Positions 9,365 through 13,136 of a stretch of 64,000 nucleotides of DNA are shown here, one piece after another; positions within the stretch are counted from its first letter, which is position 1; each line of letters opens with the position of its first letter. The notes beneath the pieces are model-generated. The model ran no database searches and had not been told where the DNA came from. It worked only from the letters and a program-made list of their open reading frames with translations. The position numbers and the translations under genes are program-made. The DNA is taken from the sequence record KJ019142.1. One strand, given 5' to 3'.

Positions 9365-10444
9365 ATGGCTTCAACACTTACACGCCGTCAAGGCGCATCT
9401 ATCTGGGATCAGTTTTGTTCCTGGGTCACATCAACCAACAATCGTCTTTACGTCGGTTGGTTCGGTGTTCTAATGATTCCTACATTGTTAGCCGCAACTG
9501 TATGTTTCATTATCGCTTTCGTGGGTGCTCCCCCAGTGGACATCGACGGAATCCGTGAACCAGTAGCTGGTTCACTCATGTATGGAAACAACATCATCTC
9601 TGGTGCAGTTGTTCCTAGTTCAAACGCAATCGGTCTACACTTCTACCCAATCTGGGAAGCAGCCACACTCGACGAATGGCTCTACAACGGTGGTCCTTTC
9701 CAACTAGTTGTCTTCCACTTCCTTATTGGTATCTACGCCTATATGGGACGTGAGTGGGAACTCTCTTATCGTTTAGGTATGAGACCTTGGATCTGTGTAG
9801 CATACTCTGCACCAGTTGCAGCAGCTTCAGCAGTATTCCTAGTCTATCCTTTCGGTCAAGGTTCATTCTCAGACGCGATGCCCTTGGGTATCTCTGGAAC
9901 ATTCAACTACATGTTGGTCTTCCAAGCAGAACATAACATCTTGATGCACCCCTTCCACATGTTGGGAGTCGCAGGTGTCTTCGGTGGTTCATTGTTCTCA
10001 GCGATGCATGGTTCACTTGTTACCTCTTCACTTGTCCGTGAGACAACTGAAACTGAGTCACAGAACTATGGTTACAAGTTCGGCCAAGAAGAAGAGACCT
10101 ATAACATCGTGGCAGCCCATGGCTACTTCGGTCGTTTGATCTTCCAATACGCTTCATTCAACAACTCACGCTCACTCCACTTCTTCTTAGCCGCATGGCC
10201 AGTTGTGGGTATCTGGTTCACCGCACTTGGTGTTTCCACAATGGCATTCAACCTCAATGGTTTCAACTTCAACCAGTCTGTTATCGACGGACAAGGTAGA
10301 GTATTGAACACCTGGGCGGATGTTCTTAACAGAGCTGGTCTTGGGATGGAAGTAATGCATGAGAGAAATGCACACAACTTCCCACTAGATTTGGCAGCAG
10401 CTGAGTCCACACCAGTGGCTCTAATTGCACCATCTGTTGGTTGA
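9365..10444 (+). CDS. psbA: photosystem II D1 protein, uninterrupted
   Basis: Full-length D1 sequence; MGREWELS (Glu130 form), [17 protein letters not shown]. Confidence 0.99.
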
Positions 10445-10514: not shown

Positions 10515-10745
10515 ATGTCTCACGATCTAATCGAATTGCTCACTTACTATGTGATCGGTGGTGCCCTTATCATAGGACCACCCGCTATCTTTCTCATCAT
10601 TGCTATGATGGCAGCACTCCAAAATACGAAAGGTCGCATGGTTGGATACAAAGATCACAAAACTTATGGTGATTCATCCATCTACGATCCGGCACCAAAA
10701 TTGCCAGTAGATCAAACAAAATTCTTCCTGGAACTTAACAACTGA
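10515..10745 (+). CDS. small membrane hypothetical protein
   Basis: 76 aa with one TM-like segment. Confidence 0.7.
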   Translation: MSHDLIELLTYYVIGGALIIGPPAIFLIIAMMAALQNTKGRMVGYKDHKTYGDSSIYDPAPKLPVDQTKFFLELNN

Positions 10746-10756
10746 GGTAAACAAAA

Positions 10757-10804
10757 ATGACGACAAGTACACTTACAACACCACAAAGGGGGTGTATTCG
10801 TTAG
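10757..10804 (+). pseudogene. psbD: orphaned 5' fragment of psbD
   Basis: GAGG RBS then MTTSTLTTPQRG(CIR*), matching the usual cyanophage D2 N-terminus (MxxSTLxxxxRGWFD) up to the Trp codon. Confidence 0.7.
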
Positions 10805-10838
10805 TCTGGAAGCAACTGACACAAATACCATAGGGGTA

Positions 10839-10868
10839 TTGGCAAAACCCAAAAATATGTGTTATACT
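10839..10868 (+). promoter_or_regulatory. sigma70-like promoter
   Basis: TTGGCA-N18-TATACT with extended -10. Confidence 0.5.
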
Positions 10869-11112
10869 GGGTAGGGATAGGTAGAGTATTCAGGGGTGAA
10901 AAGACTACCTATACCCCCCAATAATACACAGCAATAATACACAGAGAATACTTATAATAAAACCCCTACGGGGTTTGCCTACGGGCAACTGAAAGAGATA
11001 TATGTATAGGGGCAACTGATATAACTGCTATGCCCGCTACGCCAACCTGAAAAACCACAAAGGTAGTATAACACCAGAAGTAGTTATTGGCAACTATCTA
11101 GAAACTATCTAG

Positions 11113-11141
11113 TTGCCGCAGGGGTTTTTATGCGTTATAAT
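11113..11141 (+). promoter_or_regulatory. sigma70-like promoter of the acidic ORF-HNH pair
   Basis: TTGCCG-N17-TATAAT. Confidence 0.7.
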
Positions 11142-11164
11142 AATAATACCCTGAATACAAAACT

Positions 11165-11329
11165 ATGAGTATGATAAAACAGCGCCTGTATGAGGTAGAT
11201 ATTGCCCCAACAGAAGAAGATATGGCAGAGTATGAGTTATACTGCTACTACCAAGATATGGTAGAGCGGTATAATACTACCGCCCCAGAGAAGTTTTTAG
11301 AAGAGGCGTTTGGTGAAGAGGTAGAGTGA
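11165..11329 (+). CDS. small highly acidic protein (54 aa)
   Basis: Manually read MSMIKQRLYEVDIAPTEEDMAEYELYCYYQDMVERYNTTAPEKFLEEAFGEEVE; GTGA overlap with the HNH start. Confidence 0.7.
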   Translation: MSMIKQRLYEVDIAPTEEDMAEYELYCYYQDMVERYNTTAPEKFLEEAFGEEVE

Positions 11330-11958
11330 AGCAACTAATACAAAACCCAAACAACTATACAATAACCCCAGAGGGGGTTGTATTATCTAACAAATACAAA
11401 CGCCCCCTATCACTACAATATGATAGAGGGGGCAACCCCTTCTACCAGATAAAACGCCTAGGGGGTGGTAGTAGGCAACAACTATACCAAAACAAACTAC
11501 TACCCCAACACTACCCCTTCTACTGGATAAACCAGTTAGAAGAGGGTGAAGAGTGTAGGAATATAACTTATATCTACCAACACCCTATGCCCCCCTACAA
11601 ATACTTTATAACCAACAGAGGTAGGGTTTGGAGCAACATATCTAATAGGTTTTTAGAAACCCAACACAACTATGGTAGGGGTGGATACTATGATAGAATA
11701 ACCATAGATACACACTCTGTGAATACACACTGGTTGGTAGGTAGATACTTTTTAGAGAACTGGTATGCTGGTTGCTTTGTTTGCCATAGGTGTGAAACTC
11801 TACCCTACCCAAACAGAAACTACCCTACTAACCTGTGGGTAGGCAACAACAGCAGCAACCAGTTAGATAGTGAGAGCAAGCAGAGAACACTACACAGAAG
11901 AAAGAGAGTGAGTGAGTGTATGAGAGGCAACCAAAACTGGCGGGGCAAACACAAATAA
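11326..11958 (+). CDS. HNH homing endonuclease (NUMOD4/I-HmuI-like)
   Basis: Two YxITxxGxVxS NUMOD4-like segments, HWLVGRYF, VCHR...NYPTNLWVGNNSSN HNH core, basic C-terminal tail. Confidence 0.8.
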   Translation: MKQLIQNPNNYTITPEGVVLSNKYKRPLSLQYDRGGNPFYQIKRLGGGSRQQLYQNKLLPQHYPFYWINQLEEGEECRNITYIYQHPMPPYKYFITNRGRVWSNISNRFLETQHNYGRGGYYDRITIDTHSVNTHWLVGRYFLENWYAGCFVCHRCETLPYPNRNYPTNLWVGNNSSNQLDSESKQRTLHRRKRVSECMRGNQNWRGKHK

Positions 11959-12015
11959 CACACAAACTCTGTATAACTGCTCTACTACGCTTTCTAACCT
12001 AGCACTTTGTTGCTC

Positions 12016-12057
12016 TGGACTAACAGGGAGTTATGTGTTATAATATAAACATAAATA
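12016..12057 (+). promoter_or_regulatory. dual early and late promoter for psbD
   Basis: TGGACT-N17-TATAAT (12016-12044) and CATAAATA (12050-12057); same layout as the psbA promoter. Confidence 0.65.
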
Positions 12058-12077
12058 CATATAACTTCACAAAAACT

Positions 12078-13136
12078 ATGACTGCTTCACTTGCACCCCC
12101 AAAAAGCAACGGGGGTTGGTATGATATTTTAGAAGACTGGTTGCAGAAAGATAGGTTTGTCTTTATTGGCTGGTCTGGATTACTACTTCTTCCCACTGCT
12201 TATCTTGCCATTGGCGGCTGGCTTACTGGCACAACTTTTGTCACGAGTTGGTACACCCATGGTCTTGCTTCTTCCTATCTTGAGGGTGCTAACTTTCTCA
12301 CGGCGGCTGTCTCGACTCCTGCTGATGCTATGGGTCATTCTCTTCTTCTACTTTGGGGTCCTGAATCTCAGGGCGACTTCCAGCGGTGGCTCCAACTTGG
12401 AGGGCTTTGGTCCTTTGTTGCTCTCCACGGTGCCTTCGCTTTAATTGGATTCATGCTTCGTCAGTTTGAACTGTCACGACTCATTGGTATCCGTCCCTAC
12501 AACGCTATTGCATTCAGTGGTCCTATCGCTGTATTTGTCAGTGTGTTTCTTCTATACCCACTAGGTCAATCTTCCTGGTTCTTTGCCCCCTCCTTTGGTG
12601 TGGCAGCAATCTTTAGATTCCTATTGTTTCTTCAGGGTTTCCACAACTGGACACTGAACCCCTTCCATATGATGGGAGTTGCTGGTATACTAGGTGGAGC
12701 ACTACTATCTGCAATCCATGGCGTTACTGTTGAAAATACCCTATATGAAGATGGAGAACAGAATAACACCTTCACTGCGTTCGATTCCACCCAGGAGGAA
12801 GAGACCTATTCGATGGTTACTGCGAACCGCTTCTGGTCGCAAATCTTCGGGGTTGCGTTTAGTAATAAGCGTTGGCTTCACTTCTTTATGTTGTTTGTTC
12901 CTGTCATGGGTCTTTGGGTCTCAAGTATTGGGATCATTGGGCTTGCTCTTAATCTTCGTGCTTATGATTTTGTGAGCCAAGAGATTAGAGCAGCAGAAGA
13001 TCCTGAGTTTGAAACTTTCTACACAAAGAACATCCTTCTTAACGAAGGACTAAGAGCATGGATGGCACCTGTGGATCAACCACATGAGTCATTTGTATTC
13101 CCAGAAGAAGTTCTACCTAGAGGTAACGCATTGTGA
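12078..13136 (+). CDS. psbD: photosystem II D2 protein
   Basis: Full D2 from [34 protein letters not shown] to [10 protein letters not shown]. Confidence 0.98.

Follow-up and report, generated by a model that had tools for sequence, protein, structure and literature searches.

A putative RNA-gated leader gene common to free-standing homing endonucleases of unrelated classes in T4-like marine cyanophages

Introduction

Much of the mosaicism of phage genomes is driven by free-standing homing endonucleases, and how their genes are expressed safely in new gene neighbourhoods is known only case by case, from T4. The present analysis concerns a small open reading frame (ORF) for an acidic protein of 54 amino acids (aa), at positions 11165-11329 on the plus strand of the window, by which is meant the whole stretch of 64,000 nucleotides (nt) that was analysed. 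The window corresponds to Synechococcus phage ACG-2014f isolate Syn7803C11 (KJ019142.1; 100% identity over the region), a T4-like cyanomyovirus (Kyanoviridae). The small ORF is located between psbA (9365-10444) and psbD, directly before the gene of an HNH-type homing endonuclease; GenBank labels the two genes hypothetical protein AIX41313.1 and hypothetical AIX41314.1. Comparison with its relatives suggests, with somewhat better than even confidence, that the small ORF is the RNA-gated leader cistron of a portable expression module that free-standing homing endonuclease genes (HEGs) carry in T4-like marine cyanophages.

The closest described systems are HEGs of T4-type phages. For I-TevI and segB of T4 and mobE of Aeh1, the ribosome-binding site is sequestered on upstream transcripts, and the sequestration is escaped by use of a proximal promoter (PMC2988022). 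The start of mobE, at nrdA, and other HEG starts in T4-type phages overlap upstream ORFs, which has been read as translational coupling that limits synthesis of the nuclease (PMC2988022). A comparable arrangement, here read from the sequence alone, is found at the present locus, where an upstream RNA segment (10886-10895) can pair with an initiation region (11149-11158), a promoter (P2) lies between the two, and the nuclease start overlaps the stop codon of the gene before it. The T4 hairpin, however, blocks the ribosome-binding site of the nuclease gene itself, and the ORF overlapped there is one resident in the phage, whereas the gate described here would act on a dedicated small gene, one that travels together with the nuclease and is common to unrelated nuclease families.

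Promoter-early stem-loop (PeSL) cassettes of T4-type phages, which combine a terminator-like stem-loop with a sigma70-like early promoter and lie at ORFs that differ between near-identical genomes, were proposed by Krisch and colleagues as mediators of modular shuffling (PMC2839356, PMC4122927). A composite of this kind is present in the window: a stem-loop (11089-11117) and its T-run lie over the -35 element of P2, the 3' arm of the stem itself being that -35 element, the cassette occurs in 9 of ~57 genomes, and the module appears to recombine among cassettes. The PeSL papers do not deal with cyanophages, however, and the present locus differs in having two promoters, a covarying anti-leader segment and a conserved protein gene inside the module. 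The contig junctions at the module ends, described below, are only indirect evidence bearing on recombination at a PeSL-type element.

The psbA-psbD interval of cyanophages is already known as a site of a free-standing homing endonuclease, F-CphI (S-PM2 ORF177; PMC6083498), and siblings of the window's cassette likewise carry nucleases with an EndoVII motif. The enzyme of the window is HNH_3/I-HmuI-like, not EndoVII-like, and its cassette lies inside the first codons of psbD, which it provides with a new 5' end. A search of PMC6083498 for "upstream" and for the names of neighbouring ORFs found no mention of a leader gene of F-CphI. In HEG islands, small ORFs that travel with the nuclease genes are noted as common and unexplained (Barth et al., PMC10055350). 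Fragments of cargo genes make up many of them, whereas the small ORF described here belongs to a conserved family of intact genes, whose place is fixed and which has a regulatory RNA of its own.

Type II toxin-antitoxin pairs and colicin DNase-Im pairs resemble the locus in that a small acidic protein and a basic nuclease are made from overlapping genes, but no homology is found, and here a single family of small proteins accompanies nucleases of several unrelated folds. If the likeness extends to binding between the two proteins, the natural fusion described below is the only hint of it. Another comparison is with Ocr, ArdA, Arn, T7 gp5.9 and phi29 p56, which are small, highly negative, early-expressed DNA mimics. 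The small protein is like them in size, charge and presumed early expression; it has no sequence or fold similarity to them, and it is tied to HEGs and not to anti-defence loci. The small ORF is a part of the cassette and probably not an anti-restriction weapon.

One Small Gene Before Nucleases of Several Classes

In a survey based on short metagenome contigs, the small ORF lies directly 5' of a homing endonuclease gene in 13 of 14 distinct contexts, which were all the contexts that could be retrieved (in what follows, loci of relatives are labelled L with a number, and one fusion protein P0022). The partner nucleases are of the HNH_3-like, classical HNH, EndoVII-like and GIY-YIG classes and, as assigned from their sequences, represent two or more unrelated catalytic folds. 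Cassettes at no fewer than five genome sites, namely psbA|psbD, gp45|gp44, nrdA|nrdB, next to gp32 and before gp59, have the module in common.

At psbA|psbD, the small ORF and the gene for the 210-aa HNH enzyme overlap by GTGA in the window and in eight sister isolates. The only other relative of this HNH enzyme (76% identical), in the Tara metagenome locus L024, is again preceded by the small ORF with the same GTGA overlap. A previous reading of the locus, made from the sequence alone, had coupled the small ORF to the HNH gene and had proposed co-occurrence with HNH homologues as a check. The co-occurrence is confirmed, and so is the physical link, which is far more general than was supposed; as a link to HNH genes in particular it does not stand, the partners including EndoVII-like and GIY-YIG nucleases.

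The remaining contexts vary in both site and junction. An EndoVII-like nuclease of 197 aa (phrog_1035/3322) overlaps the small ORF by 8 nt in L004, where the site lies between gp45 and gp44, and in L012 and L013; other EndoVII-like nucleases follow the small ORF downstream of psbA in L010 and a divergent small ORF in L031, and the overlaps at these five loci range from 4 to 8 nt. Among HNH enzymes, those of L016-L018 are NUMOD4/I-HmuI-like (8-nt overlap), those of L026 and L027 belong to phrog_655 and lie between nrdA and nrdB (4-nt overlap), and that of L028-L030 is a Pfam HNH_3 enzyme (PF13392) encoded before an SSB gene (1-nt overlap). Nucleases with a GIY-YIG motif, of 220 and 210 aa, are found upstream of the gp59 helicase loader gene in L011 and L015 (4-nt overlap), and in L019, where gene calling overlooked the start, a complete GIY-YIG nuclease has its start 1 nt past the stop codon of the small ORF. 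An in-frame fusion is encoded upstream of gp32 in L025, in which a Lys/Glu-rich linker joins the small domain to an I-TevI-like GIY-YIG nuclease. The nuclease part of this fusion (P0022) scores above the cut-off of TIGR01453, and the fusion is known from one contig.

Some observations on these loci stand apart. In L010 (434-1658), an 86-aa Endonuclease_7 (PF02945) ORF lies between psbA and the full module with its small ORF and EndoVII-like nuclease, so that two nuclease genes stand in succession after psbA. In the GIY-YIG nucleases of L011 (439-1101), L015 (307-939) and L025 (478-1227), long stretches rich in Lys and Glu contain a repeated YY-x-x-N-K-E-like unit; L011 and L015 have this stretch at the C terminus, and the fusion has it between its small and catalytic domains. 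Existing start calls appear to be in error for the L019 nuclease (332-820), for the fusion protein (L025 472-1227), which starts two codons earlier, at MSM, and for the US42 gene Syn7803US42_3 (L003 1267-1900, minus strand), which is read here as starting further upstream and as having a GIY-YIG motif.

The Predicted Promoters and the Proposed RNA Gate

The upstream regions of all close cassettes align and share the order P1, hairpin, 12-bp GC-rich stem with GTTTTT, P2, 23-nt leader and ATG. The distal promoter P1 (10839-10868, plus strand), predicted by a consensus scan, is TG-extended, has the form TTGGCA-18-TATACT (TTGGCA..TGTTATACT) and is kept in all sibling cassettes. The transcript from P1 would begin with a hairpin (10869-10926; inverted repeats I1 and I16), the apex of which (10886-10895, GTATTCAGGG) is the exact complement of a leader segment (11149-11158, CCCTGAATAC; inverted repeat I16) at -16 to -7 from the ATG of the small ORF; the apex may therefore be called an anti-leader. 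A terminator-like stem-loop (11089-11117; inverted repeat I11) with its T-run, together spanning 11089-11129, is the PeSL-like composite mentioned above. The proximal promoter P2 (11113-11141, plus strand; consensus scan), with TTGCCG-17-TATAAT 24 nt before the ATG, is sigma70-like and corresponds to the early promoter that the sequence-only reading had placed before the small ORF, and it is near-identical in sibling cassettes.

The cassettes occur in two forms. An insert of 176-191 nt (10935-11111) distinguishes the psbA-side "long form", which is carried between hairpin and P2 by the window, its sister isolates and L010; it is delimited by an alignment gap in short-form cassettes and by contig joints 10912->11104 and 10934->11111. 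Short-form cassettes have an equivalent 12-bp stem with GTTTTT, the 3' arm of which supplies the -35 element of P2 (TTGCCG), and the short-form module (hairpin and terminator) is predicted to fold with -40.7 kcal/mol (z -4.2). Also present within the long-form insert are a terminator-like hairpin (10959-10977) and, in inverted orientation, a copy of the P1 -10 region, which makes a promoter-like site on the minus strand (11093->11065); transcription from this site would run antisense to the P1 hairpin.

Complementarity between apex and leader is found at the same positions in 11 of 12 cassettes, with 9-14 Watson-Crick pairs, as against runs of 5 on average and 8-11 at most for shuffled leaders. 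The paired sequences exist in seven versions, and those of the divergent loci L003, L004, L026 and L031 are completely different. Because each apex across the seven versions fits its own leader best (9-14 pairs, compared with 4-8 for foreign leaders in a cross-table), apex and leader covary by compensatory changes. A scan of 10700-12100 against Rfam gave nothing credible.

A copy of P1 and the start of the hairpin (77 nt, ~90% identical) is present elsewhere in cassette-less genomes, at L020 2001-2077 (KJ019037.1 157642-157718) and in ~45 sister genomes, upstream of a 98-aa hypothetical ORF that adjoins the gene for GDP-mannose dehydratase; the promoter-hairpin element thus seems to be used beyond nuclease cassettes.

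The Downstream Nuclease and the Gene Junction

The gene that follows the small ORF (11326-11958, plus strand) encodes a basic protein of 210 aa (isoelectric point (pI) 9.7; phrog_12376) that is identified by profiles and catalytic residues as a free-standing homing endonuclease of the HNH_3/I-HmuI-like kind. It matches phrog_959 (E value 1.5e-6) and the PADLOC homing endonuclease (HEase) profile (E value 2.7e-4), and its H-N-N residues, H154, N169 and N178, are invariant among its relatives, one of which (L028) passes Pfam HNH_3 (PF13392) and another of which (L017) matches I-HmuI (1u3e) with an E value of 0.003. The 210-aa protein itself had no match in a Pfam scan. Its AlphaFold2 model, built from five sequences, has a predicted local distance difference test score (pLDDT) of 53, and below 50 in the catalytic part, and was not used for a fold search. 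By these sequence criteria, the downstream gene encodes an HNH-type (beta-beta-alpha-Me) homing endonuclease.

The TGA stop codon of the small ORF (11327-11329) overlaps the GTG start of the nuclease at 11326, as the sequence-only reading had noted. A Shine-Dalgarno-like GAGG (11318-11321, plus strand), recognised by reading of the sequence, lies 4 nt 5' of this GTG, inside the last codons of the small ORF. No significant local RNA structure was predicted around the nuclease start (11270-11390; z -1.5 and +0.5), which suggests that the gate targets the small ORF rather than the start of the nuclease. A programmed -1 frameshift that would join the two ORFs into one gene was rejected as an explanation; no slippery heptamer was seen at the GTGA, and the junction varies among cassettes.

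The Small ORF as a Protein Gene

The small ORF, from its ATG to its TGA, encodes 54 aa with 15 Asp/Glu, 4 Lys/Arg and 6 Tyr, exactly the composition counted in the sequence-only reading, and the pI of the product is 4.05. Per residue, the product carries a net negative charge of 0.20, compared with a 95th percentile of 0.08 for the window's ORFs of at least 100 aa. The protein matches phrog_10005, a family to which no function is assigned, over its full length (residues 1-54 on profile positions 1-54; E value 2.5e-36), and its paralogues match the same profile with E values of 1e-31 to 1e-40. Pairwise ratios of nonsynonymous to synonymous substitution (dN/dS) in the family are 0.1-0.4, with dS up to ~1-2. 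A core, E-Y-E-L-Y-C-Y-Y-x-D-M, is kept even in the most divergent members despite synonymous variation of its codons (TAC/TAT, TGC/TGT, TTA/TTG/CTC/CTA and GAG/GAA). The annotation as AIX41313.1, the full-length family match and the signature of selection together argue that the small ORF is not a chance frame; on the evidence of these sequences it is a genuine protein gene on which purifying selection acts. This conclusion is conservative, because the word constraints on the cassette leave synonymous sites not fully free. An internal promoter (TTATACT within EYELYC) as the explanation of the conserved core was rejected, since relatives vary these codons synonymously.

The family is very small and marine, with ~20 clusters in all, every one of them from marine cyanophages. 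A word search of 5.8 billion proteins yielded 16 clusters and a full HMMER search of 1.8 billion proteins yielded 7 representatives at 50% identity, and all members come from marine phage isolates or marine metagenomes. In Pfam (E<=1), NCBIfam, PADLOC and the PDB sequences, the small protein had no match.

The AlphaFold2 model of the small protein, built from 17 sequences, predicts three helices (3-12, 17-38 and 41-49) with a pLDDT of 77.5. Foldseek found 0 matches in the PDB, a helical model of 54 residues giving fold searches little power; VIA-align reached a best Z of 4.4, with generic helices only; the sole match in BFVD was the protein's own family; and a search of the ESM Atlas gave nothing usable. 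Structure prediction of the protein alone, which the sequence-only reading had proposed, thus yielded a usable three-helix model but no match to a solved DNA mimic.

Exchange of the Module Between Nucleases

The small ORF does not track its nuclease. In the psbA|psbD cassette, the same HNH enzyme (96-99% identical) occurs with two small-ORF alleles that are 74-76% identical to each other. In the tree of the small protein, the window allele groups with copies attached to EndoVII-like nucleases (support 96/91), and the L024 copy, attached to an HNH enzyme, groups with that of L019, attached to a GIY-YIG enzyme (support 98/95); the phylogeny of the small protein, as reconstructed, is discordant with nuclease class. 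Metagenome contigs change partner at window positions 11314 and 11324, that is, within the last five codons of the small ORF. From the two alleles per HNH enzyme, the discordant tree and the partner-switching contigs it follows that the small ORF and its upstream region form an exchangeable module, which by this sequence evidence recombines freely among nuclease classes.

A Model for Gated Nuclease Expression and Its Alternatives

In the model that we consider somewhat better than an even bet, the module consists of P1, a hairpin whose apex is antisense to the ribosome-binding region of the small ORF, a terminator-like stem with P2, the small ORF and the nuclease gene. Because P2 lies between the two pairing segments, RNAs that start at P1 or further upstream would hold both partners and RNAs that start at P2 only the leader. 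The former would have the initiation region of the small ORF closed in cis by the anti-leader, or alternatively a short RNA from P1 would close it in trans, and the latter would be open for translation. Ribosomes that finish the small ORF would then restart on the nuclease gene and, since they would reach it by passing on from the small ORF, a nuclease of any family would require translation of the leader for its synthesis and be produced at a lower level than the leader. Translational coupling, promoter use, termination, RNA pairing and timing are all inferred here from the arrangement of sequence elements, and any nuclease placed behind the module would, by the same inference, inherit regulated and limited expression. 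That one gene, with its promoters and RNA gate, is common to unrelated nuclease folds at no fewer than five hot spots suggests an exchangeable adaptor that solves the problem of expression for any incoming nuclease. The model also offers a function-level handle on a family of the "viral dark matter".

The acidic product may, speculatively, serve as a generic partner that damps the non-specific DNA binding of the nuclease rather than acting on host restriction. This idea draws on the conservation of the protein, its extreme acidity compared with its very basic partners, its obligatory co-synthesis with them and the one natural fusion; a generic, charge-based damping of the co-translated nuclease is possible. 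In a bolder form, which we hold to be rather doubtful, the small protein would be a universal, portable "safety catch", a DNA-mimic-like subunit that sits on the basic DNA-binding surfaces of all these enzymes, whether HNH, EndoVII-like or GIY-YIG, accumulates in excess through coupling and is displaced only by the cognate target. If true, this would be an undescribed immunity or antitoxin principle for selfish nucleases and, together with the covarying anti-leader RNA, a plug-and-play unit for expression and safety, available by recombination to any nuclease gene. If the protein itself tempers nucleases, a compact and general nuclease damper would also be of practical interest.

Several observations weigh against the leader-module model and its extension to damping. 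At L003, after gp32 in isolate US42, the only copy of the small ORF without a co-directional nuclease faces a convergent nuclease gene with a NUMOD3 motif. The same isolate has, between gp59 and gp32 (KJ019101.1 216446-216913; L032 1447-1914), an HNH_3 endonuclease gene without a phrog_10005 leader, and the module is therefore not obligatory for the homing endonucleases of this phage group. In cassette L019, pairing between apex and leader is absent. A role as leader alone leaves the strong amino-acid conservation unexplained, and a damping partner for HNH, EndoVII-like and GIY-YIG enzymes must act through a generic feature only.

Among readings of the protein, a generic partner or damper of the nuclease is in our speculative ranking the most attractive, followed by a helper directed at the DNA break, for instance an exonuclease inhibitor. 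Such a helper would act on the break and not on the nuclease, so that the cut genome is repaired from the cassette-bearing donor, for example by blocking a host or phage exonuclease, as T7 gp5.9 and lambda Gam block RecBCD, or by mimicking the acidic tail of gp32 and thereby recruiting recombination proteins. Association with every HEG class, whatever its catalytic fold, and a phylogeny independent of HEG class are as expected for a common target of this sort, and in size and charge the protein resembles small DNA mimics such as gp5.9. It has, however, no similarity in sequence or fold to solved proteins, no target can be named, and an in-frame fusion to a nuclease would be less natural for a factor that acts elsewhere, so that we regard the helper as unlikely.

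Somewhat more unlikely still is that the peptide has no function and the act of translation alone matters, by bringing ribosomes, and the GAGG within the ORF, to the start of the nuclease. The stop/start overlap in nearly all contexts and the targeting of the regulatory RNA to the initiation region of the small ORF would be explained, and HEGs of T4 likewise overlap unrelated upstream ORFs. Against this stand the dN/dS of 0.1-0.4, the invariance of the motif despite synonymous change and its retention in divergent members with otherwise dissimilar DNA, and the keeping of the domain when it is fused.

The sequence-only reading had named first an anti-restriction DNA mimic of the Ocr, ArdA or Arn kind, which as cassette cargo would account for the strong acidity, for the early-type promoter and for the position of the small ORF as the first gene of the unit; the freedom of the cassette from several degenerate palindromic words likewise hints at a nuclease-related pressure on its DNA. 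This reading finds no support beyond charge and is very improbable, as no Pfam family, those of known mimics included, and no PDB sequence or fold is matched, and the gene is confined to mobile nuclease cassettes, being found only beside HEGs and absent from 48 of ~57 near-identical genomes, whereas a benefit to the whole phage should not ride on a selfish cassette. If restriction were neutralised, moreover, an avoidance of sites limited to the cassette would be unnecessary. The other function suggested at that time, a specific inhibitor of the adjacent HNH enzyme in the manner of an immunity protein or antitoxin, is the least credible of all despite the toxin-antitoxin-like layout of a small acidic protein encoded 5' of, and overlapping, a basic nuclease, because one HNH enzyme is paired with two diverged small-ORF alleles, the window allele is closest to copies paired with EndoVII-like nucleases, and the GIY-YIG partners share no fold with HNH.

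The Mobile Cassette

The small ORF lies within a mobile homing-endonuclease cassette of 1355 nt (10795-12149, plus strand), which replaces 31 nt of the empty site. Its borders were delimited by comparison with empty sites and by metagenome contigs in which 10794 is joined to 12150 via 31 other letters. The left border is a stranded original 5' end of psbD (10757-10794, plus strand), with the start codon and ~12 codons, which is identical to the psbD start of the cassette-less L021-L023 up to 10794. Comparison with cassette-less isolates thus puts the insertion point within the first codons of psbD, and the present psbD (12078-13136, plus strand) has a replacement 5' end brought by the cassette, with a new ATG at 12078 and a different wording. 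A promoter for this re-headed gene, P3 (12016-12044, plus strand), is predicted by promoter scan and would be supplied by the cassette.

The cassette is carried by 9 of the ~57 ACG-2014f records, and a search of IMG/VR returned one locus only, a sister isolate. In two marine metagenomes, contigs of the empty site (depths 15.7 and 34.4) were found together with contigs of the cassette (~2-6), the former being 3-10x deeper; cassette-bearing and cassette-less psbD alleles therefore co-exist in the same marine samples.

Word Avoidance in the Cassette

The sequence-only reading had described the cassette as free of palindromes. This holds for particular degenerate words: [ACG]AT[CGT] (VATB) occurs 0 times in the 1422 nt of 10756-12178, where ~52 would be expected, the next longest gap in the 64-kb window being 193 nt; [GT]TA[AC] occurs 2 times in the cassette (22 expected) and RGCY once (5-15 expected). 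All AT dinucleotides of the cassette fall in TAT or ATA. It does not hold for palindromes at large, since all 4- and 6-bp palindromes taken together are at the 19th percentile, which is not low, and TATA and ATAT are abundant. Word avoidance by itself is no argument for an anti-restriction role of the small protein. Sibling cassettes with other nucleases are also free of VATB (L024, L016, L017, L010, L012 and L019), and the divergent cassettes L025, L026, L028 and L031 are not. On top of this symmetric avoidance there is a strand-specific bias, in that the dinucleotide TC is depleted four-fold on the plus strand only (10757-12177; 14.8 compared with 63.5 per 1000), whereas GA is not depleted.

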